A DNA stretch of 64,000 nt, from NCBI RefSeq assembly GCF_001194135.2, contig NC_069002.1, forward strand, positions 16,380,913-16,444,912. Reading direction: 5' to 3'. The position numbers were made by a program, and so were the translations under genes. This DNA comes from Octopus bimaculoides. Taxonomy: Eukaryota. Under the pieces are notes generated by a model. That model searched no databases and was not told where the DNA came from. It saw only the letters and a list, made by a program, of their open reading frames with translations. This document shows, piece after piece, positions 188 through 48,700 of the stretch. Position 1 is the first letter of the stretch, and each line of letters starts with the position of its first letter.

Positions 188-203
188 ATGTCTTACACAC
201 TCA
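188..203 (+). CDS. WDR1: WDR1 coding exon 1 (MSYTL + first base of K)
   Basis: ATG TCT TAC ACA CTC A then GTAAGT donor; phase 1 joins exon 2 (A+AA = Lys); resembles the M-x-Y-x-I/L-K start of AIP1 proteins. Confidence 0.85.
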
Positions 204-11576: not shown

Positions 11577-11624
<48 letters not shown>

Positions 11625-13546: not shown

Positions 13547-13600
<54 letters not shown>

Positions 13601-15026
13601 ATCTGAAGTGCAGTTGGTTTCTGATTGCATTGAAAATTAGGTTCAGTGCTATACAATAGTTTATCCACTCAAAACAAATTCGCACACAGAAACATCTTGG
13701 ACTCATGGAACATTTGCATGGAATTTACTGAGTTTAGGAAGCAGTCTTACTCAGTCACCAAAGTGACTTCCACCATATACAGTATCTCACAGAAATATGT
13801 ACAAGGCGGCAAGTTGGCAGAAACGTTAGCACGCCGGGCGAAATGCTTAGCGGTATTTCGTCTGCCGTTACGTTCTGAGTTCAAATTCCGCCGAGGTCGA
13901 CTTTGCCTTTCATCCTTTCGGAGTCGATAAATTAAGTGTCAGTTGCGCACTGGGGTCGATGTAATCGACTTAATCCCTTTGTCAGTCCTTGTTTGTCCCC
14001 CTCAGTGTTTAGCCCCTTGTGGGCAATAAAGAAATAAGAAATATGTACCCTTCTAAAAAATTTCAGTGAAATTGTCATTACTCTGACAACATCAAAGGAA
14101 ATGAAACGGAAGTAATACTGAATGAAATATATTATGCACACAAAGTTATACTGAATGAAATATATTATGCACACAAATATTATACAAATTTGGAACACCA
14201 AACAATAAACATGATTATTCCCAAACTCCTTTCCCTTACATAGGTTTTGGCAAAAGAAAGAGGACTTGATTTATGCCTGGTAGTGAGGAGAGGCTTCCTA
14301 CGAGGAACGCATCCATGAAGACAACACTGGTTCAAACTTCAGCAAACTGTTTGGGTGGATACACTCTTTCCACTAACAGAAGACACACCTTGGGCCAAAG
14401 ATGAAGCGGTATGATGCCTGTCATCCATCATGCAACGTTGGATATGGCGAATATCACACGCAGTTAAAATAGAAAGACAACCTGGAAGATGTTTATTGCT
14501 TAGCCGTCCAGTAGCTTTGTACTTCTGAATTACTTTGACAACCGTGTTAACTTGTATACTAAACCAGGTATGAACGAAATATTAATTTTCAAAGTTACAA
14601 AAATATGTACACCATGAAGGAAATTTGCTATATTCAATATTTTATCCACTTTTTTTTACTAAATTCAGATGTTGCTGATAATTTCAATTCTAATAAATTA
14701 TTTCTCCTGGCATTTTTGCATTGGTCATTGCTATTGCATCTGCAGGAATTCTGATTTGTGTACCGTGGTGAAAATCTTCTTCATTGTGATTAAAGTGGCA
14801 CCAAAAGGAAAAGAAGTGTCTGAAGATTTGAAGAAAATTATTTTTAATTTGTACAAGGAATTATAAGCGCAGGTGTCTGTGTATGGTAAGAAGCGTGCTT
14901 CCTTACCACATGGTTCTGGGTTCAGTCCCACTGTGTGGCACCTTGGACAAGTGTTTTCTAATATAGCCTTGGGCTATATTAGTAAATTTGGAAGACAGGA
15001 ACTGAAAAAAGCCCATTGTGTGTGTG

Positions 15027-15067
<41 letters not shown>

Positions 15068-24000: not shown

Positions 24001-25727
24001 ATTCTACCTGTTTTATCTTCAAAACAGCCAGATCTGGTCTCTCACACCTATCCTACAACGTCATTTTAAAAATAAACAGTCACATCATCAAAATCTCGAA
24101 ACTATGTGATAGTGCATGATGAATTCAAAATAATGTAAATCAATAAACATTACATTTGTTAGATTAATCTGAATGCTAAAGGGTTAAATATATTTTTCAT
24201 TCAGTTGTACAAAAACAGTACTGCTGCATGACCTTGAGTGTAACAGATAAAAATGGCTAAAAATTAATCCTTAACAAAATTTACTTCTATAAATGTCATT
24301 ATTTTTCAGAAACCACATTTCCAACTCTTCCTCGAACCCAGCGTGGCATGCCTATAGTTTTAGGTGCTGACCCCAAAGGAAAATATTTTCTCTACACCAA
24401 TGGACACAATGTTGTCATCCGAGACATCGAAGTAAGTCTGTTTTAAATACAATATTTCATATTATGTTTCATCTAAATGTCCCATTTCCTTCTCATCTAT
24501 ATTCATTGTTGTTGGCACTCCGTCACTTACGACGTCGAGGGTTCCAGTTGATCCGATCAACGGAACAGCCTGCTCATGAAATTAACGTGCAAGTGGCTGA
24601 GCACTCCACCGACACGTGTACCCTTAACTTAGTTCTCGGGGATATTCAGCGTGACACAGTGTGACAAGGATGACCCTTTGAATTACAGGCACAACAGAAA
24701 CAGGAAGTAAGAGTGAGAGAAAAGTGTGGTGGAAGAGTACAGCAGGGTTCGCCACCATCCCCTGCCGGAGCCTCGTGGAGCTTTAGGTGTTTTCGTTCAA
24801 TAAACACTCACAACGCCCGGTCTGGGAATTGAAACCGCGATCCTATGACAGCGAGTCCACTGCCCTAACCTCTGGGCCATTGCGCCTCCACCATCTATAC
24901 TCACAGTATAGAATACCAACAACTATGAAGTTCACTTTTAAAACCCATTTCATTTATGACATCATTGTTTTAGAGCTCCAGTGACTTTGATGTCACTGCC
25001 ATTACTAAACCCTGATACCAGTAATTGTATCCTTCGTTGTAGGACTCCATCACAGCCTAAAACCTGGTTTACTGTGTCCCACCCCCCAATACTATTAGAC
25101 CTCTAGTTGTGATATCCCTAGTTGTAGGGTCCTGAATGACAACTATACCCTCTAATTGCAGAGCCCTTACAACAACGTTCCTGGTTACAGGCCCCAACTA
25201 GAGTGGACATTCCTAGCTATAGCCCCTAACTCCTACCCATTCCATGCTGTCTAATGTCTGTGTTATGTCATCATTCTAACTGCTAATGATTTGTCTGTTG
25301 TCGTAGAACCCCAACAAATGTGATATGTACACAGAACATTCCGGTAATGTGATTGTTGCCAAATATTCTCCGAGTGGTTTCTACATTGCCTCTGGAGGTA
25401 AGATACCTTTCTCTTTTTCTTATCATTTTACGCTATTAATGAGTCACCAAGGAACTGAATTCTTATCAGTCATGTTTCTATTGAGAACAACTGTCATTCT
25501 GAAGTGTTTAAATAAATTATAGGATTCAATTACATACATATATATATATGTATATAGGTGCAGCAGTGGGTGTGTGGTAAGAAGCTTGCTTCCCAACCAC
25601 ATGGTTCGGAGTTCAGTTCCACTGCATAGCACTTTGGGTAAGTGTCTTCTACTACAGCCTTGGGCCAACCAAAGCCTCGTGAGGGGATTTGGTAAATGGA
25701 AACTGAAAGAAGCCCATCGTGTATGTA

Positions 25728-25824
<97 letters not shown>

Positions 25825-26703
25825 GTGTCTGTATGTATTTGTGTGTTTGTGCTTGTTCCCCCACCATTGCTTGACAGCCGATGTTGGTGTGTTTACATCC
25901 CCATAACCTAGCAGTTCAGCAAAAGAGATCAATAGAATAAGTACTCGGCTTACAAAGATTGAGTCCTGGGGTCGATTTGTTTGACTAAAGGCGGTGCTCC
26001 AGCATGGCTGCAGTCAAATGACTGAAACAAGTAAAAGAAAAGAATAAAAGAACATATATTTATATATGTATATATATCACACATCACCACATTGTTTAAT
26101 GTCTGTTATCCTTGCTGGTATGGGTTGGACAGTTTGACAGGAGCTGGCCAGCCACGGAGCTGTCCAAACAACAAATTGTCTGTTGTGGCATAATTTCTAT
26201 GGCTCGATGCCCTTCCTATATAAATTTTGGCACAAGGTTTGAAGTTTTGGGGGAAGGGGCAAATTGATTACATTGATCCCCAGCGTATAACTGATACTTA
26301 TTTTATTGACCCCGAAAGGATGAAAAACTAAGTCAGCCTTGGCAGCATTTGAACTCAGAACTTAAAGACCGATGAAATGCTTGGCGTGCTAATGATTCTG
26401 CCAGCTTGCTATCCTACTACCATTATCATTTAATGCCCATGTTACCTGCTGGCATGGGTTGGACATATACATACATGTACACATGTATATTATATCTCAA
26501 ATAATGAAAAAGAGGGGAAGTGAGTTGCCAATTATACAAACTTCTCCCAGTACTTGACTAGTATTCTGTTTAGTTGTTGACCCCAAAAGGATGGAAAACA
26601 AAGTTGACTCTAGTGGAATTTGAACTCAAATTAGAGTCAGAAGAAATACTATGAATCATTTTATCTGATGCTCAACAACTCTGCCAGTCCACCACCTGTA
26701 TAC

Positions 26704-26740
<37 letters not shown>

Positions 26741-27261
26741 CCTTTCTGCTCTAGGCACAAGGCTTGAAATTTGTGGGGAGGGGGTAAGTTAATTACGTAA
26801 TAATAATAATAATAATGATGATGAAGATGATTTAGGTACAAGGCCAGTAGTTTTGAAGGGGAGAATGTAGTCAATACCTTTTGAATACAGTTGTTATTTA
26901 TTTTATTGACCCCGAAACAATGAAAGACAAAGTTAACTTCTGCTGGATTTGAACTCAAGAATGTTAAAAAGTGGGAAGAAATACTGCAAGGCATTTTGTC
27001 TGTCTCATCATCATCATCATCATCGTTTAACGTCTGCTTTCCATGCTAGCATGGGTTGGACGATTTGACTGAGGACTGGTGAACCAGATGGCTGCACCAG
27101 GCTCCAATCTGATCTGGCAGAGTTTCTACAGCTGGATGCCCTTCCTAACGCCAACAACTCTGAGAGTGTAGTGGGTGCTTTTACGTGCCACCGGCACAAA
27201 GGCCAGTCAGGCGGATACTGGCAACGGCCACGCTTCCTAATGATTTTGCTAGTTTGCTGTC

Positions 27262-27296
<35 letters not shown>

Positions 27297-28100
27297 TATG
27301 GTTTCAAATTTTACCGTAAGGCCAGCAAGTTTGGAGGTGGGGATAAGTCGATTACATCGACCCAGTATTCAACTGGTATTTATTTTATCGACCCTAAAAG
27401 GATGAAAGCAAAGTTGACCTTGGCTGAATTTGAACTCGGAACATAAAGATGAATGAAATGCTGCTAAGAGTTTTGCCCAGTGTGCTAACAATTGTACCAG
27501 CTCAGACCTTAACCTGTTGAGCATGTCTCTCAGTGGCTAAAGATAAGTGTATCTCTGATTACCAGCTCTGAGTAGCGGGGGAGCATCATTGACATGTGTT
27601 GAGAGGGATTCTTTGGGGTTTAAATAATTCACCCCTGGAAACATTGGTGTTTCTTTCATCATCCTTGGACAGCTCTCATTCAGGGACCTTTTGATTAGGA
27701 TGAGCTACTCAACCTGCAGAAAATTCTAACTGGACCACATCTGCAAAGTCATGTGCTGTGATACATGTTCCTTGTGTATCTTTATCAGATGGGTAATCAT
27801 GATGGATATTTGGGCTTTGTATATTTGCACCTCAGCATCATATTGATGGTGTGTGCTGCTCTCTCAATCAAGAATAATAGCAATAATAATAATAATCATA
27901 CATGTATTTGTTCCAGATGACAGGGGCAAAATTCGAATTTGGGATACAATCAACCCAGAACATGTTCTCTCCAAAGAATATCAACCAATCGCTGGAATAA
28001 TCAAAGACATTTCCTGGTCTCCAGATAGTAAGAGAATGCTTGTTGCTGGTGAAGGCAAGGGAACGTACGTGATCAAATCTATAACATCTCTCTTTTGCTT

Positions 28101-28147
<47 letters not shown>

Positions 28148-29478
28148 CTCTTTCTTTCTCACCCCTTGTTTTTTTTTATTTTGTTATTTAGCCATAGGCC
28201 AGCAAACTATATCAAGCACATTTGCAATCTATCGTATTCCAGCTTTAATCACTTTATCTTTTCAGGTGTATTATTAAAGAGAGGAGAGTGTCATTCATAT
28301 GAAATTGGCTGCTATTACTAGCCGGTTACGCCTCCATGTACTGGCTTCTTTTTGTTGGTGTGTAGCCCCAATCAACTCACACTAACATATACAAAAAGTG
28401 ATATAACTGCAAGAGCTTCTTTTGTCTTTTGGATGATGAATATTTTAAATGATAACAATGTAAACATCTAAAATTTGTAAAATTATTTAAACCATACTAT
28501 CATATAAGTATAAAAAAATTAAAAAGCCACAGCAATGTTAATTACTCCAAACTGGAATTTTGTTGATGTTAAATTATAATTTGATATTTTTACCAGGTTC
28601 GCTCGTGCTTTTCTGGTGGATACAGGTTCCTCTGTTGGAGAAATTAGTGGCCACAGCAAACCAATCAATTCCTGTGACTACAGACAAATTAACCCCTTCA
28701 GGGTGGTGACGGCCAGTGAGGACTACTCTATTATCATGTGTGAAGGCCCACCATTTAAGTTCTCCAAAAAGATTGATGTGAGTATTTAGTTTTTGTTTAA
28801 TGGATTATTGTTGTAGTGTAGTCTCTGGTTGGCTCTGATCAAGGCGAATTATGTAGTAACCCACAGGTTACCCAGTCAGAGCGTACCTGCAGGTGCCATG
28901 AGTACTTCCCACCTCTCATATATCTGTATGTGTGTGCATATATATATATATGTGTGTGTGTGTGTGGAGGTGCAATGGCCCAGTGGTTAGGGCAGCAGAC
29001 TTGCGGTCATAGGATCGCGGTTTCGATTCCCAGACTGGGCGTTGTGAGTGTTTATTGAGCGAAAACACCTAAAGCTCCACGAGGCTCCGGCAGGGGATGG
29101 TGGCAAACCCCGCTGTACTCTTCCACCNNNNNNNNNNNNNNNNNNNNNNNNNNNNNNNNNNNNNNNNNNNNNNNNNNNNNNNNNNNNNNNNNNNNNNNNN
29201 NNNNNNNNNNNNNNNNNNNNNNNNNNNNNNNNNNNNNNNNNNNNNNNNNNNNNNNNNNNNNNNNNNNNNNNNNNNNNNNNNNNNNNNNNNNNNNNNNNNN
29301 NNNNNNNNNNNNNNNNNNNNNNNNNNNNNNNNNNNNNNNNNNNNNNNNNNNNNNNNNNNNNNNNNNNNNNNNNNNNNNNNNNNNNNNNNNNNNNNNNNNN
29401 NNNNNNNNNNNNNNNNNNNNNNNNNNNNNNNNNNNNNNNNNNNNNNNNNNNNNNNNNNNNNNNNNNNNNNNNNNNNNN

Positions 29479-29520
<42 letters not shown>

Positions 29521-30020
29521 CAAATTTGTACAAAAAACAAAATATAGATGAGTTAACAAACAATGTGTTTTAGTTTGACATTCAGGAAAAATGTAAGAAG
29601 CCTGAATGTATATAATGTATGTATGTGTCAAATTCAATAAGATCAGAGATTTATTATACTTAAGGGTCATTTCTCTTAAGTCGATTGTATCTCTTCCTTA
29701 TATCAATAAATCCCTGCCTAGTGTAGAGATCAGTAATTCCTCTGGATTTTGGTCTGTGTTTTAAATTCCATGTTTTTCATTTGCAGACACACACAAATTT
29801 TGTTAACTGCATTCGTTACTCTCCAAATGGTGAAAAATTTATCTCTGGTGGTGCTGATGGAAAAGTAAGTACTAAGGATAAATGTTTGGGTTTGTTTTCA
29901 TTTTGTGTGATGTCCTTAAAGTAATAGTGCAGGGATTACTCTGCAATTAAGAACACACACATACACGTGTGTGTGTGTGTGTGTGTGTATAAGGACTCTA
30001 ATTTGCTGCCAATGTATAAA

Positions 30021-30066
<46 letters not shown>

Positions 30067-30157
30067 CACACGTATATATATATATATATATACATACACA
30101 CGTATATATATATATACATACACACGTATATATATATATATATATATACATACACAC

Positions 30158-30224
<67 letters not shown>

Positions 30225-30723
30225 TTTATACATTGGCAGCAAATTAGGGTCCTTTATGTCTGACTGATCCCTTCAAAGTTCATTTACAATTATTCTGCAA
30301 TAAAGCTTTCATCTTATTTCTATTTTATAAAAATTATAACTGTAATGAAATTAAAAGAAAAAAGGTCTATTGTGAATTCTGAACCATTTTCTCACTGGAC
30401 TGTAATTAATTTGTCTTTAGTTAGATATGAAAATAACATCCACTGAAAACTGATTTTGTACTAAAATTGTTATCTCTCTTTTTATAACTGCCATTTCGTT
30501 TTAATCATTGTCGATATGCCAATAGTGAAATAGTTACCTAGATTATAGTTTAGTATGAAAATATTTACTCATATTTAACTGTTTTTATATTAACATTCAT
30601 TTGGTGACTTGTAAAAATATGGAAGTTCTTGCGGAAATACAAAAGCAAAAATGAAAATAAAAAAAAATATTGTGAAAATCCAGTGATGTTGAAGTTTGAT
30701 TCGCACACATACACACAAACCCA

Positions 30724-30757
<34 letters not shown>

Positions 30758-33700
30758 AAGACAGCATGTAAGCTGAAACTTCAAAGCCACTTTCAACTTT
30801 TCTATTACTATGGTAATGTGAGGATGTCCCATCTTCCTTGAAATAAAACTCTACATCTTCAAAGTTTACTTGAATAATAGGTGTGTCACCTGTGTGAAAA
30901 GACTGCTGTTGGCTTGTGCAGGCTCTCTTTACCATATATACACACACAAGAGTTAATATATAGATGATTTTAGTGTTAGGAAGAGCATCCTGCCATAGAA
31001 ACCATGCCAGAACATACAGTGGAATCTGACACAGCCAATGGCTTTGCCAGCTTCTGTCAGACCATCCAACCCATGTCCGCATGGAAAACATGTTAAATGA
31101 TGAAGATGCTTTATCCAAGTGTTGTTTATTCAACTCTATTTTTGCTGTTAATTATTGAAAAATTAATCCTTGTTGTTTTATTACATTTTTTTTTCCTAGG
31201 CCTTTGTTTATGATGGAAAAAATGGTGAAACAATTGGTGAACTTGGTTCTCCTGCTCACAAAGGTGGTATTTATGGGGTAAGAAGATAATCATTTTTCCC
31301 TGTTTGTTTTTTTTCTTTGTAAATCTTCTGCAAGTTGTACAGTTTTATAAAGTTCTTATATTTTATTTACGTCATTTCCTGAACAAAATTTTATTATCTT
31401 TTATTTTTACCATATTATAAAGCGGAACCATGGTTTATGTGCGGGCGACACATGAAATCTTTCAAGCGGGATCGTTGCCGGTGCCCCTGGACTGGCTCAT
31501 GTGCGGGCAACACATGAAATCTTTCGAGTGGGATCATTGCCGGTGCCCCTGGATTGGCTCATGTGCGGGCGACACATGAAATCTTCCGAGTAGGATCGTT
31601 GCCGGTGCCCCTGGGCTGGCTCTTGTGCGGGTGACACATGAAATTTCTTCGAGTGAGATCGTTGCCGGTGCCCCTGAACTGGCTCTTGTGCGGGTGACAC
31701 ATGAGGTTTCTCGAGCGAGATGAGCGTGGCCGTTGCCAGTACCGCCTGACTGGCCTTCGTGCAGGTGACACATAAAAGCACCCACTACACTCTCTGAGTG
31801 GTTGGCGTTAGGAAGGGCATCCAGCTGTAGAAACTCTGCCAAATCAGATTGGAGCCTGGTGTAACCATCTGGTTTCACCAGTCCTCAGTCAAATCGTCCA
31901 ACCCATGCTAGCATGGAAAGCGGACGTTAAACGACGATGACGACGACATTCTTTCAAGTCCAACAGAATGCCACTCATTTACAGAGGAAGTAACCTCACC
32001 ATCACCCACATCATGATAGGATGTGTGATGGAGCAAAAGGGTTGTTAACTAAAGCTTCTCATCTGCAGCATCTGCATCACATCTAAGGACAGAGATTCAG
32101 TCCATCAGGTCTCTTCTTTTCATTTCTGGATCATCTCATTGGCTCTAGAATTAAGGAGATATTTACCCTGGTTAGGACTTAATAAATAATATCACCAATT
32201 GGGATATCAAAGGAATAACTATTTTGACAGCTGCATCCCCTTCTTACTGCAAACTGTTTAACTCTTTAGCATTCAAACCAGCCATATCTGGTTCTTATTT
32301 TTATGTTCAAACTGGCCAGATCTGGCCTCTCACACATACCCTACAATGTCATTCTAGAAATAGGCAATCACATCATCATAATCTTGAAGCTTCAAGATAA
32401 TGTATGATTAATTCAGAATGATGTGAATGAATAAGCTTGGCATTTGACAGAATAATCTGAATGCTAAAGGATTAACCATGAACTGGAACCCATTTCTGTC
32501 GGTTGGTTGGTTGGTTGTGTTGTGCTGGGGAACAAAGACACATATTTTATTCAGGAGTGCAACATAATGGCTGTTGTACTTGAGGTTTGATTTGAACTCT
32601 TGATTTTGTAGTCCATTGTCCAACACCTTAAAATAACAGCTACTATGCTTCTCTCCCTCTCTTTTCAGAAGGTTATCAAACTAATGCAAACACGAAACTA
32701 CATCTTATGTAGAACTAGGATGTCCTAGTACATCTTATCTAGATCTAGGATGTCATTGTTAGATACTACAGATTATTAAGTTTCTGTTATTAACACCAGG
32801 TCTACTCTCCGATTTAGCAGATCTATAATCAAAGACTGGGTGGATTTGAGGGAGATCTGATTGCTATTTCTAAAACTCCTGGTAACCATATACACTCCTT
32901 TCTTGATCATTGATAATTTGTGATTTTTTTAGCTCCAGGTCAGACATCCCAACTGACAACTGTCTAATTTTTTTTTTTTCAGATAGTGTATCTATGACTA
33001 CACAATCTAATGTAGAGTCTGTCTCTCTCTTTTTTTTTTTAAGTAATGTGTAATTTGAAGGAGATTTAGCTGTTATTTCAAGCAGATTAAGCAACCACAT
33101 AGAGGCTGTAAATGCACCCCTGTTTGCTGTGACCTTGTACAAAAAAAATGTTTGACTACTGTGAAATATTTTTCCATTTTTATGTGAAGGATTGTGGTTT
33201 GTTTTCAAGTTACACTGAGGCATCTTCTGCAGACAAGGACATCAGCTATCAGTGGGACGTTTATTTTTAACTGAGACATCTGTTGTAGGTAGCATTTCTG
33301 CTGTAGGCTAAGACATCTACAACAGCTGAGATGTTTACTACTGACTTGGGTAGATATTCCAGTCTGTGGCAGCTATCAAAATGCACAACACAAAACTTAA
33401 ATCATAATATTTGTATTTATATCTGAGACAAGTGTCTCTGTCAACAAATATAACTATTTCTGTGTGAAATTGTTTTCTTTTTAATCTGATCAAATCTTGA
33501 CATTGGAACTTGCATTTCCGATGCTGCTTTCATGTTTCTTTGATCACCTTAGATCAATTAGACATATTCTTCTATGTTGCCAACATGAATATTTCTATCC
33601 AATATCACTATCTGTTTTGGTATAATTTGTTATGGCTGAATGCCCTTCCTGATACCAAACACCCCATAGAGTGGGCTGAATGCTTTTTATGTGGCACCAC

Positions 33701-36700
33701 CACAATCAAGGTCAGTTTTGGCATAGTTTTTACAGCTGGATGCCCTTCCAAATACCAATGTAGCACCAGCACGAGCAGGGTCGCCAAATAACTTGCAAGA
33801 CTAGAAATTCTGAGAAGGGAGAGGGCATTGGAGGAGGTGATCTTGTGTCAGCTGATGAAAGGTGAGAGTGTGATAGAGAGACGGAGAGGCAAAAACAGGT
33901 GTCTTGCTACCTGGCCAGCTCCTATCAAACTGTCCAACCCATGCCAGCATGGAAGATGGATGTTAAATGATAATGATGATGATCTCAGTTTATGACCATT
34001 TTCATTCTGGTTTTCTTTCTCTTCGTGGCTATACTATCTTTATTATGAAGTATTCTGGCCCCTGGTTTATAAAGACAAGGAATTAATTGAAACATGACTG
34101 CTATATTGATGATCACTTGACCACAGATGCAAGACGATTCTTCAACCCTATTTCTGTCCACTGCTTCTTCAAATTAATTATCATCTATGTACTGCCTCCC
34201 TTCATGTCCATCTCATTACCATATCTTCCCTCTTTGACCTTTCATTTAGCACTTTTCTCCCAATCCTTCCTTTTCCAGGGTCAGCATCACTCTGGAAATC
34301 CCTCCCACTTTATATTTTTCTGACAGACAAACTCCTATAGATTGTGAATCTCAACATCTGCATCAATCTCATTAGTCACTCCCACTTACTTTGATTCATC
34401 ATCATCATCACCATTGTCATCTTATGCTAATTTTCCGATGCTGGCATGAGTTTGTTGAGTTATCATGGGCCGCTCAGTTTTTATTTAGAATTGTTGCTCT
34501 TTTAGGAATGGTCGGAGGGCCACATCTCACTCAAGCATTTTCTTTTGACTTGGTTTTCACAACTGAATGCCCTCCCTCATATTAACCATTGTACAAATAA
34601 AATGCTGGTTGTGTTTTGGTGTGGCACCAACACTAAAGAGGTACCATCCTTGACAGTGCAAGAGTTGGGAAATCCTATCTTGTTTAAAAAAAAATAAACA
34701 GATACAAACAAGCCCTCCATAATGATTTATTCTCAATACTATTGATTTAGTCTCCGTTTTATTGATTGACGAACGAACAAAAACTTTAATCAAATTTTCC
34801 ATTTTGACAGTTCTTATTTCTCTCTTGTTCTTCACTTTAGATTGCTTTCAATCCAGACAATTCTGAAGTGCTGACAGTCTCTGGTGACAAAACTGCCAAG
34901 ATCTGGGATGCTAATACATATACTTTGATCAAGTAAGTCTTATTCAATTATTTTAATTCTTAACACCCTGTACGACTTCAGTCTTCGCCACACCACATCA
35001 CATCTGTCTGTTAATCATGCCGTGTCTGACACTGAGGAATCAAACTTCTGGTGCTTATATTGGCTGTAACAGGAAGTTAAACTCTGTGATATAGGGGAGA
35101 TAACTGTATTCCATTCTTCTGTCATTTATTTACATCATCATCATCGTTTAACGTCCACTTTCCATGCTAGCATGGGTTGGACGATTTGACTTAGGACTGG
35201 CGAACCGGATGGCTGCACCAGGCTCCAATCTAATCTGGCAGAGTTTCTACAGCTGGATGCCCTTCCTAATGCCAACCACTCCAAGAGTGTAGTGGATGCT
35301 TTTACGTGCCACTGGCTAGCCCCTTTTTTCTAAACACAACACAACTCTTTATTCCATGCATCCTAATCTTTCTAACAATTATCTACATGGATTACCATTG
35401 AACTTTAAAAGCTCAAAGACAATATAATGTATTGATATATTTATTTTTTTATATATTATTTTTTATTTTTTTGTAAAAAACATTTTCNNNNNNNNNNNNN
35501 NNNNNNNNNNNNNNNNNNNNNNNNNNNNNNNNNNNNNNNNNNNNNNNNNNNNNNNNNNNNNNNNNNNNNNNNNNNNNNNNNNNNNNNNNNNNNNNNNNNN
35601 NNNNNNNNNNNNNNNNNNNNNNNNNNNNNNNNNNNNNNNNNNNNNNNNNNNNNNNNNNNNNNNNNNNNNNNNNNNNNNNNNNNNNNNNNNNNNNNNNNNN
35701 NNNNNNNNNNNNNNNNNNNNNNNNNNNNNNNNNNNNNNNNNNNNNNNNNNNNNNNNNNNNNNNNNNNNNNNNNNNNNNNNNNNNNNNNNNNNNNNNNNNN
35801 NNNNNNNNNNNNNNNNNNNNNNNNNNNNNNNNNNNNNNNNNNNNNNNNNNNNNNNNNNNNNNNNNNNNNNNNNNNNNNNNNNNNNNNNNNNNNNNNNNNN
35901 NNNNNNNNNNNNNNNNNNNNNNNNNNNNNNNNNNNNNNNNNNNNNNNNNNNNNNNNNNNNNNNNNNNNNNNNNNNNNNNNNNNNNNNNNNNNNNNNNNNN
36001 NNNNNNNNNNNNNNNNNNNNNNNNNNNNNNNNNNNNNNNNNNNNNNNNNNNNNNNNNNNNNNNNNNNNNNNNNNNNNNNNNNNNNNNNNTATATATATAA
36101 TTTAATGTACACAATATGAGCTACTCATAGTTTCCTGCTTTGGAGAAGCAGGTCTAGGCAGGTTTTTATTACACACCATGTGTCTCCAAGCAGTCTTCAG
36201 GCTGAGCTATGTTAAGTTGAGTGACCCTAAAGATTCTACCAATTTACATGCTATCATGCCAAACATATATAAATTATGAATTTGCAGTAGAAAACTGTTG
36301 GATATAGTTTGCTGTTCTGTTAGGTTAAGATCAACAAAAAAGTTCCATCCAGTTATATATTGTTCATGTGTGTATGTATATATCATTTAACGTCTACTTT
36401 CTATGCTGGTATGGGTTGGACAGCTTGACAGGAGCTAGCTAAGCAGAAGACTGCACCATGCTTCACTGTCTGTTTTGGCATGGGTTTTATATCTGGATGC
36501 CCTTCCTAATATCAACCACTCTACGGAGTGGAGTGAGTGCTTTTTACATGGCACTAGCACATACAATGTCAGTTTTGGCATGTTTTTTTTTTTGTACAAC
36601 TGAATGCCCTTCCAAGCTAAGTTTAGTTAAGTTTATATAGAAAAAGAGAAAAAAAAAATCTTAATGTTTCATAAGGAATCTTTCATTAGAAACAAGAATT

Positions 36701-39700
36701 GATCTAAATTAACTTTCTTAATTAGGAAGTTCATTTTCTCACAATGCTATTAATTAGTTATTAAATATATCTAAATTAACTTTCTTCATTAGGAGAGTCA
36801 TCATTTCACAAATGGTATTAATTTGTTGTTAAACAAGTTGTTTGTTTTTTTTTTTCCAGGGAATTTGTGTTTGGGAAGACACTGGAGGACATGTTGGTCA
36901 GTTGTATTTGGATTGGTAATAGCATCATCACAGTCTCTTTGTCTGGATTTGTTACATATTTAGACAGGAATTGCCCAGAGAAGCCTCTTCGTGTTCTTAA
37001 GGTGTGTTTAACATCTCACAAGCGGTGTATGTGTGTGTGTGTTTTCTTAAGTTGACTTGCAGCTGTTGTTTCTTATTTCTTTATTGCCCACAAGGGGCTA
37101 AACATAGAGGGGACAAACAAGGACAGACAAAGGAATTAAGTCGATTACATCGATCCCAGTGCGTAACTGGTACTTAATTTATCGACCTCGAAAGGATGAA
37201 AGGCAAAGTCGACCTCGGTGGAATTTTGAACTCAGAACGTAACGGCAGACAAAATATGGTTAAGCATTTCGCCCGGCATGCTAACGTTTCTGCCAGTTGA
37301 CTTGCAACTGTTGTTTCTGTCAGTCAGTTGGTAGGAATCAAGTTTTGAATGTGGATATTTTTACCATTATGTGACTCTGCATATTTTTTTAGGTCCACAC
37401 AGGTAAAAAATGCTTTTTTAGGACTTCAACTTCATTTACATCCTCTAACATCTCATGATCAGGTCATGAATATTACAACATCAAATTTGTGGCTTTGTGA
37501 TAATGTAGGAGATTGTTAATGGTAAAATAATTAATAATCATCATCATCACTTAACGTCCCTTGTCCATGCTGGCATGGGTAGGACGGTTTGACCAGGGCT
37601 GGCAAGCTGGAAGGCTGCACCAGACTCCACTCTGATTTGGTATGGTTTCTATGACTGGATGCCCTTCCTAACGCCAACCAATCTGAGAGTGTAATGGGTT
37701 CTTCTGCGTGCCACTGGCACAGGTGCCATTTGCATGACACCAGTATCTAATACGACTGTGATTTTACTTGGCTTGATGGGTCTTCTTGTCAAGCGCAACA
37801 TAATGCCAAAGTCTCTCAGTCATTCATCGTTGCCTCTGTGAGCCCCAAAACTTGAAAAGAGCTTTTCACATGCCACCAGCATTGGCCACTTTGCCTCCAT
37901 AAGGCCCAATGCTCATCAGGTGCTTTTTATGTGCCAGTTACGAGACTCCAGCATTGGCCACGACTATGATTTCACTTGGCTTGACAGGTCTTCTCAAGCA
38001 CTGCATATCACCAAAGGTCTCGGTCACTAGTCATTGCCTCTGTGAGGCCCAAAGTTTGAAGATCATGCTTCACCACCTCATCCCATGTCTTCCTGAGTCT
38101 ACCTCTACCATAGGTTCCCTCCACAGTTAGAGATCGGCACTTCTTTACACAGCTGTCCTCATCCATGCGCATCACATGACCATACCAACACAGTCCTCTT
38201 TCTTGCACACCACATCCGATGCCGCTTATGCCCAACTTATGTCATACATGCACAGACATGCACATCCAGCAAAGCATACTGGCTTCATTTCTTTCAAGCC
38301 TACACATGTCCTCAGCTGTCACAACCCATGTTTCACTCCCATGTAGCATAGCTTTTTGCACACAGGCATCGTACAATCTGCCTTTCACTCTGAGGGCGAG
38401 GCCCTTTGTTGCCAGCAGAGATAGGAGCTCCTTGAACTTGGCCCTATTCTTATTCTCACAATATTAAGTATTATGAAGTATTAGGACGGAGAAGAGTAAC
38501 AGGTGTACTGTTAAGGATTTCATTCTCTCCACTGTTTCACATTGATATTTATAATTTCATTAGCAGCATTATTATATTAAAACTTAGGCAGTTAATTCTT
38601 TTTATTGTTTATTTAATAGCTACATCAATTATTTCCTTTTTTTATTCAGTGCTAAAAGTTTGTACATCGTAGAACACTTGTGTGTGAGTGTGTGTGCAAC
38701 TATATATATAGTGAAGGCACATGGATCAGTGGTTAGAATGTTGGCTTCACAATCATGAGGCAGTGAGTTCAATTCCCAGACTGGGCTGTGTGTTGTATTC
38801 TTGAGCAAGACACCTTATTTCACATTGCTCCAGTTCACTCAGCTGTTGAAATGAGTTGTGACATCACTGGTGCCAAGCTGTATCAGCCTTTGCCTTTCCC
38901 TTGGATAATATTGGTGGCACAGAGAGGGCGACAGCTAGTCATCCATAAACAACCTTTCCCAGACTTGTATAAATATAATATAAAAGACGGTTTGATGTAG
39001 AATGTATAGAAACAGTTCCATGATAATTCTATTTCAATACCTGTTCATTTTTGGGGAACAGAGATATATTCATTGTAGTGCTTACAATCCTGGAAGTATT
39101 ATATTCTAGCTTCCTGTTCTGAAGGTTGCTGGTAATAATTCCACAAAACACATACCTACCAATTGTACCAAATATTTTACATTGTAGACATCTCTAACAT
39201 TATTAGAGTGATCTTAACTGTTCATTATTTCACAGTTAACTGAGACAACAGCTGTAACTACTTTACACTCAGTCATGCCCTCACAGATATGTCAGCACTT
39301 GGCTATGAAAAATGGTTAATATGTAATTCTTTTTACATGTAATTTTTTAGGCTTCAAACTTTGAGACTAAGTGGTATTTCTTCCTCAATGAAGGGTCTCA
39401 TATATTTATTGTTTACTGAAACAGATCATCCTTAGTTTTTTGTTTTGTTTTTTTTTATCTTACTATTTACCTATTCTATTGTGTAAACTTTTTAAATCAT
39501 TAAAGAATTAGTTCTTTAATGATTCCAATATTTCATGTCTTGTTTCTTTGTTAGAAATATAAAACATTCAAGTATCTTTATCTTCTGTGGAGAGCAACTT
39601 TGCCTTTCAACCTTCTGAGATCAATAAAACCACCAGTCACATCCTGGGGTCAATATAATTGACTGACCCCTGCCACCAAAATTTCTGGCCTTGTACCTAT

Positions 39701-42700
39701 ATTAAAATTATTATTAAGAAGGTGGCAAGCTGGTACAATCATTAGCATGCCACATAAAATGCTTAGTGACCTTTCATCCTTTTGAGGGTCAATGAAATAA
39801 GTACCGGTTATGCGCTGTTGCTGTATTTGACTAGCCCCCCCCCCTCCCACCAAAATTTTGGGCCTTGTGGTTATAGTGAAAGGGATGGCAAGTTGGCAGA
39901 ATCATTAGTGTGCTGGATGAGGTGCTTAGCAGTATTACATCTGTCACTGTGTTCTGAGTTCAAATTCCGCCAAGGTTGACTTTGTTTTTCATCTTTTCAA
40001 GGTCTTTAAATTAAGTACCAGTGAAACACTGGGGTTGATGTAATCAACTAACTCCCCCTCCCCTCAAAATTGCTAGCTTTGTGCCAAAATTAGCAACCAT
40101 TATTATCATCATCATTATTATTATTATTAATGTTGTTATTATTTTTGTTTGTCTAGGGTCACAACAAACCAATAACAGCCCTGGCCACCACACCTGACAG
40201 AAAATTGGTTTTCACTGGCTGCAGTTCTGGTCACATCAATATCCTTTCGTCTTTGTTCACTGTATTTGTTATTCTATGTTTACTGTATGTTTTTAATGTG
40301 TTTGTTTTATTTTTATTCCTGACTTATAACATTGTAGTCTTCTATAACACTTAGGAAATAGAATGTATAATGAATGGGTGCAGGGGTGTATAGTGAGAAG
40401 ACCAGATATTTGGAAGGTGTATTTTGCTGATAATAAAGACTGTGTTTATGATGCATTGAGAGTGGAATGTAGAAATGATGAGAAGGGATACAAAGAACAG
40501 GTGGGGTATATAATGAGAAGACTAGATATTTGGAAGGTGTATTTTGCTAAAAATAAAGAGTGTATATATGACGTATTGAGTGTGGAATGTAGAAGCAATG
40601 TCTCATCTAATGTGTTTGGTCTTTTGGCCTAAACTGGTCTCTGGTCCTTAACTGGCCCTGGGAAGATGGAAGATAAAATTGAATTCAGTGTTATTTGAAC
40701 TCAGTCTATCAGTTCACTGCCTAGTGAGATGATTTATGAATATAGAGTGATTTGATTAATGAAGAATTGATCAGTATATAGTAATGTCATTAATGAGGGT
40801 GTATGCAGTGATTTATTTAATGTGATTACAACATAATAAAGCTCGTCTGAGGATTTATTCATCAACCTAAAGAAATTTCTGGGCAAATGAATAAAATGAA
40901 TTTTTTAAATTATTATTATTATTGTTATTATTAATAATAATAATAAGTTGATAATGATGATAATAAGTTGATAATGTAATAATAATAATTATTATGATAA
41001 GTTGATAATGATGATAATAAGAAGTTGATAATGTAATAATAATAAGTTGGTAAAGATAACAATAAGTTAATAATGCTAATCCATTGCTAGAGTTAAATCC
41101 TCTAGAGTGTTCATCAGATTTGGGAATGTGTGTGTTACAACAATACTTAATGCTATCTGTTTATTAATTGTCAAATGAATGCTATTTATGGCTGAGGATG
41201 AATGATTATGATAATGACGATGATTTAAAGCTTTTCCTTAATTCCTGTCACATTACTGGGATCTTGTCAATGGACTTGATGATAGAATCGTTGGTAAACC
41301 TCACCAGAGTCAGATACAGGATCTTGTGGTGTCTGGCGATAATTTGATTTCCATCAGCATGGACGACACAATTCGATTCACCTCAATTTCCTCAATGCAA
41401 TACGGGTAGGTTCTTCAGAATCTGATCCTTCTTTCAGCTTGCAGAATTCCATTTATTGTGTCCCTCAGGGTGAAATGCCTTTGTTAGTGTCTCATGTTCC
41501 TAACTTTAAATTTAGAGATTCAGAAGTTTGCAACAGAGGGGACTCAGCTAAAGGAACCCAAACTGATGGATTAAGTCTACCACCTAAGTAAACCACAGCA
41601 GATACAGTTCCTTATTTAAGTTACCATTATTGTAAGACCTCATCCAAGACCTCATCCAAAGGAAAAATTCAGTAAAAAGCACCCTTTGAACACTGGGCGA
41701 TATGCTGTGCCTGAGAAGACCCATCAAGTCAAGTGAGATCATAGTCGTTGCTGATGCCAGTGTTTCATAACTGGCATCTGTGCCATTGGCATGTAAAAAG
41801 CATCTTTTGAACCTTGGGCATCAGAGAGGCAGTGACAAGTGACCAAGACCTTTGACAATATACTGTGCTTGAAAAAAACCTGTCAAGCCAAGTGAGATTG
41901 TAATCATGGCCAATGCCAGTGTTTTGTCAAAAGCACCCATTACACTCTTGGAGTGGTTGGCGTAAGGAAGGGTATCCAGCTGTAGAAACCATGCCAAATC
42001 AGATTGGAACCTGGTGCAGATCCCCAGCTTACCACTTTTCAGTCAAACTGTCCAACCCATGCCAGCATAGAAAACTGATGTTATGATTGACAGTTTTAAT
42101 GAAGTTCAACATGGTTGAACAATCAATCCCAACCAGTTGGGATGCACGGAACAGGTTGTACTATTCATCTTTTTGATCGCTGAACACAAGAGGTGGCTCA
42201 TGAGACTTCCGTTCGGGTTATTATCCTGAGTTACCAGCTCATCCTTGCATCCCAATCCATCACAGAGTTATCCATTCACAGCTGAGTGGACAGGGGCAGT
42301 GTGGAATGAAGTGTTTTTGCTCAAGAACACAACTCACAACCAGTTTGGGAATTGAAACCACAATCTTGCAATTGTGAGTGTAGCATCTAAACCACTAGGC
42401 TACAAACATTGTTTATATGTTTTCTCTCCAGGGATGAGTTATGTATATGTAGTCTTAAGAAACAATCAGAAATACTACAAATTGTAGTGATTGTATATTT
42501 AATGTCCTCTGTTTAATGACTAATTTATTTTATTTTTACTTTTATTTTTGTATGTCATTAACACACACACACACACAGATTTTTTTTGTTTTTTATCTTT
42601 TACTTGTTTCCATTATTAGACTGTGGCCATGCTGGGGCACTGACTTGAAGGGATTTAGTCAAACAAATCAATCCCAGGACTTATTTCTTTTTTAAAGCCT

Positions 42701-45700
42701 GTTACTTATTCTCTCAGTCTCTTTTGTTGAACCATTAAGTTACGGGGATGAAAATACACTAACACTGGTTGTCAAGCAGTGATGTGGGACAAAGACAGAT
42801 ACAAATACACACACACACACATATATAGATATATACAGACACACACACATATATGATGGGCTTCTTTTAGTTTCCATCTCTCAAGTCCACTCACAAGGCT
42901 TTGGTTTGCTTGAGGCTATAATAGAAGACACTTGCCCAAGGTGCCAATGCAGTAGGACGGAACCCAGAACCATGTGTATGTGTGTGTCCATGTATGGAAG
43001 GGAATCCAATTGTAGAAACCGTGCCAAAGCAAACATCAGAGCTTGGCATAGTCCCGTGTCTCACTAGCTCTTGTTAAACCATCCAACCCATGCCAGCATG
43101 GAAAATGAATGTTAGATAATGATGATGATACACACATATATACATACACATGCACACATACACACATATTTATATATACACTCACACATAGTGTTGATAT
43201 TTTTCCATTTTAATTACTATTTTCAGAAATGCCTCAGTAAAATTAGAATCTCAGCCCCGTGCAGTTGCAGTCCACAACAACCTTACTGCAGTTGCCTGTG
43301 TCAAACATGTAATTATTGGGGGTTTTTTTTTTTATTATCTTCTTTCTGCTTTCATGTTGCTGTTTAGCCCCAGGTCAATTCTTGTTTAATAGACTTATAA
43401 TCCAAGGCCAGTTTTCACCGATTCAAAGTTGTTTGTTAGTTGTAGTAGTACAAATAGGATCACATTGTCCTTCTTTTTTTAAAGATGATTGAATGAGTTA
43501 TTTCTAACAACCATGTAGAAGCTCCCTCATTAGTTAAAAAATTATATTTAGAGCAGAAGTGGGAGGAGAAACAGGCAGAGGAAGGCAACTAAATGCAATT
43601 CCTGTGAATATAGAATATTGTTCTGCCAACTTTTGCTGTTATTGTTGAGTACAGTCAGGAGAGTATAGTGAATAGAGTACAGTTCCTAGAGTACAACTGG
43701 TGGTAAATAGACATCCATGGTTTCAATGGTGGGTATCGTGTGGTTATCTGAGCCCCTTGTACATTGACTCAGCCTCCGAATGGTTGAGTGTTCCTTAGGC
43801 AGAATCAGCAGGGGACCTAATGAACTGCAGGTACAATCCATCTGACAGGCTTCCAAACAGTTTCCATCCTGATGTCAAGATTTTGGTCAACCAGTGACTC
43901 AGGTACACTCAACATGCTTTGCAATGGGATTGAACCTGTGGCCTCACACATGCACGTGTTTCATCTGTTTGCTTTTTTTATTTTAATTAATTTTGTATTT
44001 ATCATATTTTATGAACAGTTGTATTGTTGGTTACATGTCTGCAACTGACCAATCACTGGTTCACTACATTCCTGACTGCAAGAGTAACAAGGGAGTGCCT
44101 GTAACTTGGCACAGAACAAATTTAATGAGATTTCATTCAAAGAAAGAAAACAAGAATTTCAGTCCCTTCTTTGATGTTTGTTGCCTTTGACAATATCAGA
44201 AAATGGAAGACATCATCTTTCCATTTCTGTTAATTAAAATTCTTCACACAAGGCATTGGTTTAAGCCAGTTCTATGGGAGTCCATGTGGAGGTGCAATGA
44301 CCCAGTGGTTAGGGCAGCAGACTTGCGGTCATAGGATCGCGGTTTCAATTCCCAGACTGGGCGTTGTGAATGTTTATTGAGCGAAAACACCTAAAGCTCC
44401 ACGAGGTTCCGGCAGGGGATGGTGGCGAACCCTGCTGTACTCTTTCACCCACAACTTTCTCTCACTCTTACTTCCTGTTTCTGTTGTGCCTGTAATTCAA
44501 AGGGTCAGCCTTGTCACACTGTGTCACGCTGAATATCCCTGAGAACTACGTTAAGGGTACACGTGTCTGTGGAGTGCTCAGCCATTTGCACGTTAATTTC
44601 ACGAGCAGGCTGTTCCGTTGATCGGATCAACTGGAACCCTTGACGTCGTAAGCGACGGAGTGCCAACTCATGGGAGCCCATGGCCATTCCTGGTTCCTGC
44701 TTGAATAAGTGTAGCAGTTGTTTAACCCCAGGTCAGCCCTGATCCCCCAGACTATCATCAAAGTTGCTCCACCCATGACCATCTTACTTTTTCCTTATTA
44801 TTTTTCAGCATAGTATGTTTAGGTTGGTGTGACCTTCAGTGGATGAGATGTATGGGAATTTTGACTTCTATTTCTATACTGTTAGATACCCCTCACCATT
44901 GTATTTATTCTTTTATGGTGTTAGGTAGGTGATAGTGGTTCAATTTCTCTTCTCTTCTCTGTTATTTTAACAAATGTTTTTTTTCTTTTCCAGGTAATAT
45001 TATTGCAAGGTGAACGCATTGTCCTAACACTGCCAATTTCATATGATGGATGTTCAGTTGCTTTTAATGTGAATGGCTCACTGTTGGCAGTGGGTGGACT
45101 GGTAAGTTGTTATATTTTCTGTGAGAAAATCTTGTTGATATTTAGAAATGTTTGTCTGAGTTCTCCATTCTCACAGAATGAAGAATGTTTTGTTCTATAA
45201 CTGAAGCTTTAAATCATCATCTTGGGTGCTTCCTCTGCTAATCCTGTGGATTAAGGTCTCAGTAGGGGTACTGACTGTGACCACCCTTATAAGGTACACA
45301 TTTCAGTGAGATGCGTGAGCATCATGGCCTTCTTGTTTCTTATTTCTTATTTCTTTATTGCCCACAAGGGGCTAAACATAGAGGGGGACAAACAAGGACA
45401 GACAAAGGGATTAAGTCGATTACATCGACCCCAGTACGCAACTGGTACTTAATTTACCGACCTCGAAAGGATGAAAGGCAAAGTCGACCTCGGTGGAATT
45501 TGAACTCAGAACGTAACAGCAGACGAAATATCGCTAAGCATTTCGCCCGGCAGGGTAACGTCTCTGCCAGCTCACCGCCTTCTTGTTTCTAAATATCCTA
45601 CTTCATTCACCAACTGCCTTCAACTTCACTGTTAGACTCTGTGCTAATCTACTCAATCTCTTGGTCAATTTCCCTCGTCCTCTTTTTCTTCAATTGAATT

Positions 45701-48700
45701 GAGCCCTCATAGCACTCTTTATTACAACCTATACACCAATATTCTGGGACTTTGGACCAACCTGCTCACCAACCAACCAACCAACCAGCCAACCAACGTA
45801 TCATATATCTCCTTCCAATTCCTCTCTCTGCTGCCCAGGTAACATTCTATTGACAGAATCTAAAGACCTAGAGTGTTAGATTCCTTGATATGCAGACAGC
45901 TGATCAAAATACAATTTATCAAACAGTTGGCTTTTAAAAACCAATCAATTGAAGTGACATTTGATTGAAGCAGTAATTAGTAACAAATTTTTAAATAATT
46001 TCACTGGGAATTTAGCAGAAAATTCCCCAAAATGTTTTTTTTTTTTTTGTATTCAAATGTTTATATCAGTTATAACTTGCAGTTAGATTATTGTGAAAAT
46101 TTGCCGTATTGCAGAAAAAGCAGTTTTTTGTAATATAGTCATTTTTGCTAAAAGTAATGTCGTGCACATGTGATTATCAATTACATAACTAAAAGAAACA
46201 TACACAAANNNNNNNNNNNNNNNNNNNNNNNNNNNNNNNNNNNNNNNNNNNNNNNNNNNNNNNNNNNNNNNNNNNNNNNNNNNNNNNNNNNNNNNNNNNN
46301 NNNNNNNNNNNNNNNNNNNNNNNNNNNNNNNNNNNNNNNNNNNNNNNNNNNNNNNNNNNNNNNNNNNNNNNNNNNNNNNNNNNNNNNNNNNNNNNNNNNN
46401 NNNNNNNNNNNNNNNNNNNNNNNNNNNNNNNNNNNNNNNNNNNNNNNNNNNNNNNNNNNNNNNNNNNNNNNNNNNNNNNNNNNNNNNNNNNNNNNNNNNN
46501 NNNNNNNNNNNNNNNNNNNNNNNNNNNNNNNNNNNNNNNNNNNNNNNNNNNNNNNNNNNNNNNNNNNNNNNNNNNNNNNNNNNNNNNNNNNNNNNNNNNN
46601 NNNNNNNNNNNNNNNNNNNNNNNNNNNNNNNNNNNNNNNNNNNNNNNNNNNNNNNNNNNNNNNNNNNNNNNNNNNNNNNNNNNNNNNNNNNNNNNNNNNN
46701 NNNNNNNNNNNNNNNNNNNNNNNNNNNNNNNNNNNNNNNNNNNNNNNNNNNNCCAATCAACGGAACAGCCTGCTCGTGAAATTAACGTGCAAGTGGCTGA
46801 GCACTCCACAGACACGTGTACCCTTAATGTAGTTCTCGGGGATATTCAGCGTGACACAGTGTGACAAGGCTGACCCTTTGAATTACAGGCACAACAGAAA
46901 CAGGAAGTAAGAGTGAGAGAAAGTTGTGGTGGAAGAGTACAGCAGGGTTCGCCACCATCTCCTGCCGGAGCCTTGTGGAGTTTTAGGTGTTTTCGCTCAA
47001 TAAACACTCACAACGCCCGGTCTGGGAATCGAAACCGCGATCCTATGACCGCGAATCTGCTGCCCTAACTACTGGGCCATTGCGCCTCCACTTTGAAATG
47101 ATTAAACAAGAAAGATTTGAACCGTTTAGCATTTAAACTACACGTCGTATACCTCTGTTTCTAACTCCTGTCTCTACTACGCAGCTAATGTTCTATGAAC
47201 AGAACTAAGGAACTGAAGTGTTAGATTCTTTGATATGCAAATAGCTCATTGAATTATAATTTATCAAAAACTGTTGACCAAAAAAAAAAACAATTGAGAT
47301 CACAGTTGATTGAATTTCATTAATTGCAACAAATTTTAAAGTAATTTCTTTCTAGGAGAAAAAGTTATAGTGCCTCGTTTTATTAGAATAATTCTTTATG
47401 CTCTAAAACCTTTTTAAAAACCAGTTAATTCAAGAATTCACAAATACAGCTTCACTATTTCATGTTTCGTTGGGTTTAAACTTGAAATGATAACGATTAT
47501 AATTGTGTTGAAGTGTTAATTACAGTAAAAACATTAACGCTGCCCCTTCCCTCAAAAATTGAATAACTGTAGATTTTGTAGAAGTTATGACATAAGAACA
47601 TAATTTAAACTGCATTGAAAATATTAACATTTCCCGTCCCTCTTTGAATATTTGCAGATTTGTAGCAGTTATTCTTGGCACTTCGTTGCTTACGACGACG
47701 AGGGTTCCAGTTGATCCGATCAACGGAACAGCCTGCTCGTGAAATTAACGTGCAAGTGGCTGAGCACTCCACAGACACGTGTACCCTTAGCGTAGTTCAC
47801 GGGCAGATTCAGCGTGACACAGAGTGTGACAAGGTTGGCCCTTCGAATTCCAGGCACAATAGCAGTTATTATATAGGATATAAGGGACATGAACTCTTAA
47901 CATTCTGTAAAACAAGAGCCTGCAACTTTCTGATGATGTTGCACTTCCTGAAATTGCAGAAATCATACCAATCAAGTGTGTATGTGTGTGTTTGCATGTG
48001 TGTGCATATGCCTGTGTTTGTATGTCAGCTGCTGGTTCTCAAAAGTGAAAGTAAATTAACTAATGATTTTCTCATTTTTTTTTTTTCCTCTTTTAACAGA
48101 ATTCTTTCCATGTTTACAATGTCAACAACTGTACTTTGACAGAAGCCAAAGTTGTTGAGGAATCGGGCACTGTCAGAGATCTGGCTTTTTCACCTGATGG
48201 CCAATACTTGGCCACAGGTAATGATTCAAGATATGTTATCGCTTATAGCCTTTCTAATTACTCTGTAAGTATGTTTTTCCCATTGTTTTCATTGAATGTC
48301 GTAGTTATTGTATAGCCCTAGGCCTACCTTAATCGAGCAAGTCTATAGTATGTAGACTCTTCACTGAAGAATGATATGAAACAATAATAATGATATGATG
48401 CAATAACCCTAACTCCCAGAGATTTTGTAATTCTGTCTTCTTAATAACAGTGACATATGGTGGTTCTTGTATTGGGTGCGCTGCCACACCAAATTCTACC
48501 AAATTTCAAGCAGGGGTATAACAAAAGTTTTCCCTTAAACTTTGTGATTAAATTAATGAGTAATATCTTTAATGAATTTGCCATTTTCAATGGGTGCGCA
48601 GTGCACCCCTAGCACACTTGGAATATATGTCCCTGCTTAATAACCACACGCTACATTCTGACATACACTGGTTAATTCAAATGTGGCATATCTGCATATG

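Follow-up and report, generated by a model that had tools for sequence, protein, structure and literature searches.

Organization of the WDR1 locus

The DNA described here, which we call the window, is a 64,000-nucleotide stretch of the genome of the octopus Octopus bimaculoides (NCBI RefSeq assembly GCF_001194135.2, contig NC_069002.1, forward-strand positions 16,380,913 to 16,444,912), and its principal gene encodes WDR1, also called actin-interacting protein 1 (AIP1). The coding region extends over positions 188..51548 of the plus strand, in the numbering of the window that is used throughout, and is divided into 16 coding exons by 15 introns, of which 14 have GT-AG termini and one, intron 10, has AT-AC termini. 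Exons were mapped by tblastn with a human WDR1 query that is 92-99% identical to the human WDR1 entries in the database. The resulting model encodes a protein of 596 amino acids that matches the older RefSeq protein XP_014774553.1 residue for residue and differs from the current RefSeq protein XP_052831609.1 at residue 345 only. Comparison of the window with chromosome CM046622.1 of GCA_001194135.2, from about position 16,380,913, gave 0 mismatches over 51,748 compared bases.

The identity of the gene is supported along the whole length of its product. Over 99-100% of its length the 596-residue model shares about 50% identity with the AIP1 proteins of arthropods and molluscs; it is collinear with a two-propeller protein of 14 WD repeats, and its best named matches are all AIP1 or WDR1, with 'actin-interacting protein 1 [Octopus bimaculoides]' at the top. 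The peptide that spans the AT-AC junction aligns to human WDR1 (PDB 9qfq), in which the heptapeptide GHINYWD is identical, and to AIP1/UNC-78 of Caenorhabditis elegans (1nr0). The same heptapeptide occurs in 80 of the 247 WDR1 proteins that were retrieved, including those of O. sinensis (XP_029649430.1) and O. vulgaris (UUA79760.1).

Splicing signals and junction of intron 10

Intron 10 occupies positions 40239..41251 of the plus strand, is 1013 nt long and interrupts the asparagine codon of GHINYWD in phase 1. Coding exon 10 (40157..40238) follows a normal acceptor, tttttgtttgtctag, and closes with GGT CAC ATC A (GGTCACATCA), its last base at 40238 being the first base of the asparagine codon. 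The intron continues from 40239 as ATATCCTTTC, with its AT terminus at 40239-40, and the nine bases at 40239..40247, ATATCCTTT, match the U12-type 5' splice site consensus at 9/9 positions. Its 3' end reads GCTTTTCCTTAATTCCTGTCAC (last bases TCCTGTCAC) and terminates at 41251 in the AC of positions 41250..41251. Coding exon 11 (41252..41405) begins ATTACTGGGAT, read as AT TAC TGG GAT with the first two bases finishing the asparagine codon, and ends in SSMQYG ahead of the donor GTAGGT. A U12-type branch-point motif, TTCCTTAAT, lies at 41234..41242. The two candidates for the branch adenosine, 41240 and 41241, are 11 and 10 nt, respectively, from the terminal C of the intron, and just 7 nt (TCCTGTC) separate this motif from the AC. 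The other 14 introns of the gene are GT-AG introns with ordinary acceptors.

Joining 40238 to 41252, alone among the possible junctions, restores GHINYWD and yields the full 596-residue protein; placing the junction at 40239|41253 or 40240|41254 leaves the mRNA unchanged. The spliced message expected from the AT-AC junction contains CACATCAATTACTGGGAT, and the message expected from the shifted junction implied by the current RefSeq protein contains CACATCAATATCTGGGAT. The first-pass annotation of this DNA had proposed a canonical U12-type AT-AC intron in WDR1 at 40239-41251, with a branch motif about 10 nt from the terminal AC; its coordinates prove exact, and the signals, the restored GHINYWD and the presence of the same intron in 10 other animals all agree with the call. 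It had further described the intron as having no polypyrimidine tract, which is borne out only insofar as just those 7 nt stand between motif and terminus; the pyrimidine fraction at intron positions -25..-4 is 0.68, within the range of 0.59-0.91 found for the 14 GT-AG introns of the gene, a consequence of the high pyrimidine content of the branch motif. Pyrimidine content was therefore dropped as an argument for U12 type, given that it does not separate intron 10 from the U2-type introns around it.

The weight of these motifs lies in where they fall. Shuffled sequence would be expected to contain RTATCCTTT 1.44 times, and the window has a single copy; for TCCTTAAY-N6-14-AC the figures are 2.88 expected and 4 present. 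Neither is enriched, and the significance of the motifs is therefore positional only. The sole RTATCCTTT on both strands (128 kb) falls exactly on the codon at which the reading frame is restored, and the per-position expectations of about 1e-5 and 2e-5 for the two motifs correspond to a joint chance of about 1e-10 per site.

Two further places in the gene carry partial resemblances to U12-type signals. The other [AG]TATCCTT of the window, at 25027-25034, lies within intron 2, away from exon boundaries, and is probably a chance occurrence. Intron 1, a 24-kb intron at 204-24309, was considered as a second U12-type intron and rejected: its donor is GTAAGT, and its perfect TCCTTAAC (24268-24275) lies 34 nt upstream of the acceptor, too far away, and looks like a chance match.

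The WDR1 minor intron in other animals

The octopus intron has a catalogued counterpart in vertebrates. WDR1/Wdr1 is listed as a minor-intron gene in human and mouse by Olthof 2019 (PMC6717393, Table S2), and a study of lupus neutrophils likewise places WDR1 among U12-intron genes. The human intron in that catalogue has the 5' splice site TTA|ATATCCTTT and the branch site TTTTCCTTAACC, and spans chr4:10083179-10084442 (GRCh38), or 1264 nt; the mouse intron, at chr5:38535341-38537138, has TCA|ATATCCTTT and TTCTCCTTAATC (PMC6717393). At the human locus we read GAC GGA CAC ATT A|ATATCCTTTGAC ... TTTTCCTTAACCCCACCCTAC|AT TAC TGG GAT, with ATATCCTTTG on the donor side, and the intron at locus positions 32425-33688 corresponds exactly to chr4:10084442-10083179. 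Codon and phase are thus shared by the octopus intron and the human minor intron of the catalogue.

The correspondence with the vertebrate introns is close at the ends and absent between them. Human, mouse and octopus share the gene, the asparagine codon of GHINYWD, phase 1, the AT-AC termini and the 5' splice site ATATCCTTT. The mouse 12-mer that covers three exon bases and the first nine of the intron, TCAATATCCTTT, is identical in octopus, and the mouse branch motif (TCCTTAAT) is the octopus one, whereas human has TCCTTAAC. Lengths are similar: the octopus intron has 1013 nt, the human one 1264 nt and the mouse one 1798 nt. The interior of the octopus intron is unrelated to that of the human and mouse introns and contains lineage-specific repeats; the host is a cephalopod, and its copy of the intron is known from DNA.

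At the identical codon and in the identical phase, a U12-type intron is present in 10 animals besides O. bimaculoides, human among them. AT-AC versions are found in the cephalopod Argonauta hians, in the chiton Liolophura sinensis (branch motif TCCTTAAC), in the abalone Haliotis asinina (branch motif TTCCTTAAC), in the tick Ixodes hexagonus, whose intron is about 96 nt long (branch motif TCCTTAGC), in the spotted gar Lepisosteus oculatus, where the arrangement is as in human, and in the elephantfish Paramormyrops kingsleyae. The bivalve Solemya velum (GTATCCTT and TTCTTGAC, at about 14400 and 16560 of its locus) and the tubeworm Lamellibrachia satsuma (GTATCCTT and TCCTTGAC, at about 19917 and 21147) retain the position, the phase and the U12 signals of the octopus intron but have GT-AG in place of AT-AC termini. 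The first-pass annotation had suggested checking the orthologous intron in other metazoans, and the check returns U12-type introns in vertebrates, tick, molluscs and tubeworm. WDR1 of Drosophila and of the springtail Folsomia candida lacks the intron, and a continuous exon covers the homologous codon.

This distribution across molluscs, tick, tubeworm and vertebrates shows that the minor intron of WDR1 is older than the divergence of protostomes and deuterostomes. It has stayed U12-type since then, with occasional switching of subtype between AT-AC and GT-AG in some lophotrochozoans, and was lost in some hexapods (flies and springtails). Switching from AT-AC to GT-AG within the U12 class is a known evolutionary pattern. 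The pattern at WDR1 agrees with the finding that mollusc orthologues of human minor introns are mostly minor introns as well (PMC11347168), and a comparison of minor-intron conservation across species that included Octopus sinensis found molluscs to be relatively enriched in minor introns (PMC10639083; Larue & Roy 2023).

Mechanistic interpretation

The signals, the reading frame and the comparison with other animals make it very probable that the AT-AC intron 10 of O. bimaculoides WDR1/AIP1 depends on U12 and is the orthologue of the minor intron catalogued in human and mouse WDR1. It agrees with U12-type AT-AC introns in general, which have a rigid 5' splice site, AT-AC termini and a branch motif resembling TCCTTAAC that lies 10-15 nt before the 3' end, and, as is usual for U12-type introns, it is in a non-zero phase and is the one minor intron among many major introns of its gene. 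Introns of this class are substrates of the U11/U12 and U4atac/U6atac.U5 spliceosome (Tarn & Steitz 1996, cited in PMC10639083). By analogy, the U11/U12 di-snRNP (small nuclear ribonucleoprotein) would engage octopus intron 10 with U11 bound to the 5' splice site ATATCCTTT and U12 bound to the branch motif TTCCTTAAT, bulging adenosine 41240 or 41241. The U4atac/U6atac.U5 particle would join next, with U6atac taking the place of U11 at the 5' splice site and catalysis carried out by U4atac/U6atac.U5, and splicing between 40238 and 41252 would join A|AT into the asparagine codon. Were the intron retained, translation would be expected to stop 36 codons after the asparagine codon, as in a 381-residue protein model on record for this species, truncating the product in the second half of the beta-propeller pair. 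An Rfam scan of the window returned no matches, and so no small nuclear RNA gene, minor ones included, and no small nucleolar RNA gene.

Several points weigh against this interpretation and temper it. The branch motif TTCCTTAAT departs from the consensus at one position, its final base being T where U12-type introns generally have C, although this is a common variant that mouse Wdr1 shares. By pyrimidine content near its 3' end, intron 10 cannot be told from its U2-type neighbours. The current RefSeq protein disagrees with the model at residue 345, where it reads isoleucine for tyrosine (Y345I) and hence GHINIWD for GHINYWD. Sequence and homology are the basis for the junction 40238|41252 itself; the records for the exact O. 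bimaculoides protein contained no transcript contigs, and the evidence for the spliced product is indirect, in the GHINYWD of XP_014774553.1 and of the congener entries XP_029649430.1 and UUA79760.1. Dependence on U11, U12 and U6atac is something that we infer by analogy with the known minor introns.

Alternative readings of the junction

The disagreement with XP_052831609.1 raises the question of whether the true junction is the one that this protein implies. A difference between assemblies was considered as the cause of Y345I and rejected, since the window is identical to the assembly over the 51,748 nt compared; it follows that only a junction at 40243|41257, with CT..AC termini, or at 40242|41256, with CC..TA termini, can produce the substitution. 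The existence of the RefSeq entry, which departs from our model at this residue alone, and the identity of the two genome sequences speak for such a shift. Neither CT..AC nor CC..TA is a known class of splice site, however, and a GT..AG intron read from the opposite strand has CT..AC ends, which suggests an artefact. Tyrosine is present at this position in the older RefSeq protein XP_014774553.1, in O. sinensis and in O. vulgaris UUA79760.1, and GHINIWD recurs in 11 further retrieved proteins, from fishes and a gibbon. For one of the fishes, Paramormyrops, the genome reads ATC A|ATATCCTTTC...CCCAC|AT TAC TGG and encodes GHINYWD. Errors of this type are a recognised problem, and the program intronIC automatically corrects boundary shifts at minor introns where annotated non-canonical boundaries lie near a strong minor 5' splice site. 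We therefore regard a genuinely shifted junction as very unlikely, and Y345I as probably an artefact of alignment or annotation.

A second possibility is that the major spliceosome uses a cryptic GT-AG or GC-AG pair and that the U12-like motifs are coincidental. Enumeration of all GT or GC donors in 40170-40330 against all AG acceptors in 41100-41400 gave 17 donors and 11 acceptors, which form 36 combinations that are in frame and free of stops, 40249/41285 among them, so that conventional solutions are available in principle. Yet 0 of these 36 combinations keep YWD, since the usable acceptors all lie at or beyond 41285, inside coding exon 11, and each combination also removes adjoining conserved residues of the WD blade. 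The closest AG upstream of the AT-AC acceptor (41229-30) leads to an in-frame TAA, and the donors on offer are weak (GTCTTT, GTTCAC, GTATTT and others). The statement in the first-pass annotation that no GT-AG solution restores the conserved heptapeptide is thus upheld, and extends to GC donors in the same intervals. With U12 signals at the same site in 10 other species and a positional coincidence of about 1e-10 to be explained, we give cryptic major splicing an extremely small chance. Removal of the AT-AC intron itself by the major, U2-dependent spliceosome is an equally improbable reading. U2-dependent AT-AC introns have U2-like 5' splice sites, in which AT is followed by a GTRAGT-like sequence, and lack a TCCTTAAC branch motif near the 3' end, whereas both U12 motifs are near-perfect in octopus intron 10 and its human orthologue is classed as a minor intron. 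Rare AT-AC introns that depend on U2 are described in PMC1557818.

Finally, there might be no intron at all, with the two halves representing separate genes or products: a 381-residue read-through protein and a 217-residue protein that starts at MDDTIRF, as in the 2015 annotation. Both are on record in UniProt, as A0A0L8H8Y8 (which ends in YNT) and A0A0L8H8F0. Against this stands the fact that the two halves together form one collinear 14-blade WDR1 that matches full-length animal homologues, that the read-through tail is without homology, and that the models of O. vulgaris show the same split, as expected where a gene finder fails at an intron that is not GT-AG. The probability of two real products is, in our judgement, close to nil. 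Regulated retention of intron 10 specific to the octopus may be a biological alternative; nothing in the analysis supports it.

Annotation errors at the intron

The first-pass annotation had predicted that gene finders built on GT-AG rules would mis-model this gene, and public annotations bear this out with split, read-through and 5-nt-shifted models. The 2015 annotation divides WDR1 at intron 10 into two proteins, the window positions concerned being 40157-40355 and 41360-51548; A0A0L8H8Y8 continues past the donor until it meets an intronic stop codon, and A0A0L8H8F0 takes its start codon from exon 11. In O. vulgaris the same split occurs in CAI9738773.1, and an isoform X2 reads through the donor. 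The older RefSeq model XP_014774553.1 already used the junction 40238|41252 and contains GHINYWD.

The 5-nt shift recurs beyond the octopus. GHINIWD is present in 12 of the 247 retrieved WDR1 proteins, those of octopus, several fishes and a gibbon, and a read-through form, GHINIL(S/L), in 9 more. In the CT..AC version of the shift the octopus intron would run from 40244 to 41256, the junction having moved by 5 nt. The consensus U12 5' splice site, ATATC|CT, always supplies a CT five bases in, and a downstream exon that begins xxTAC supplies an AC at the same distance. The GHINIWD of the Paramormyrops protein was traced to the same shift at a genomic site that encodes tyrosine. We put at roughly even the chance that a strand-agnostic aligner may prefer CT..AC to AT-AC, at the price of two mismatches, and so give reference proteins a wrong residue, here I for Y; were the effect systematic, single-residue errors of this kind would be expected at many AT-AC introns across RefSeq. 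Aligner scoring is the proposed cause of the CT..AC junction. A further error affects the tick, where the deposited Ixodes hexagonus protein, ...YTGTYSRFCARFWD (RFARFWD), is mis-modelled: the genome junction at locus 31440-31640 reads ATC A|ATATCCTTTTACC...TTTTCCTTAGCGCTTCTGTGCAC|GC TTC TGG and supports GCISFWD.

Significance

The novelty that the first-pass annotation implied for this feature does not survive comparison, for catalogues of vertebrate minor introns already contain it and XP_014774553.1 already uses it; to a specialist it is the ordinary orthologue of a known, deeply conserved minor intron. The first-pass annotation had also placed actin turnover under the control of the minor spliceosome in this animal. 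This is an extrapolation that would turn on whether the intron is slow or rate-limiting in octopus, and the analysis does not support it. If true, it would hold equally in most bilaterians, and for the octopus no more than for human, and no new question about actin regulation is opened by it. The recurrent and specific annotation error is the one mildly useful by-product. Errors of three kinds or more in public annotation trace to intron 10, namely a split gene, read-through truncations and the 5-nt-shifted junction with its Y345I substitution, and users of the current octopus RefSeq protein, or of the GHINIWD proteins of fishes and gibbon, should expect a wrong residue there.

Other features of the window

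Within intron 10, two copies of a 92-nt segment that are 88% identical and start 120 nt apart occupy 40383..40594 of the plus strand, and these copies create a spurious 89-residue open reading frame at 40363-40632. Further downstream in the same intron, at 40926..41081 on the plus strand, lies an AT-rich minisatellite with TAATAAGTTGATAATG-like units of about 20-57 nt. Elsewhere in the gene, the reading frame stays open beyond the donor of the last WDR1 intron (NIKG|...), over 49363-49481, and the O. sinensis isoform X2 (XP_036368037.1) ends with a homologous read-through tail, which suggests that retention of the last intron has been annotated in this congener.

The assembly contains seven gaps (runs of N) in the window, at 4263-4548, 29128-29478, 35488-36089, 46209-46752, 51946-52768, 53807-53816 and 62276-62473; 5 of the 7 fall within introns of WDR1, and all exons and the AT-AC intron are free of gaps. 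Repeats resembling short interspersed elements (SINEs) occur on both strands throughout the introns, with translated motifs such as LGRASS. Open reading frames at 62504-63632 on the plus strand and at 5986-6423 and 38008-38235 on the minus strand resemble C-terminal reverse-transcriptase fragments of retrotransposons of the kind without long terminal repeats, with motifs such as FADD.AL.

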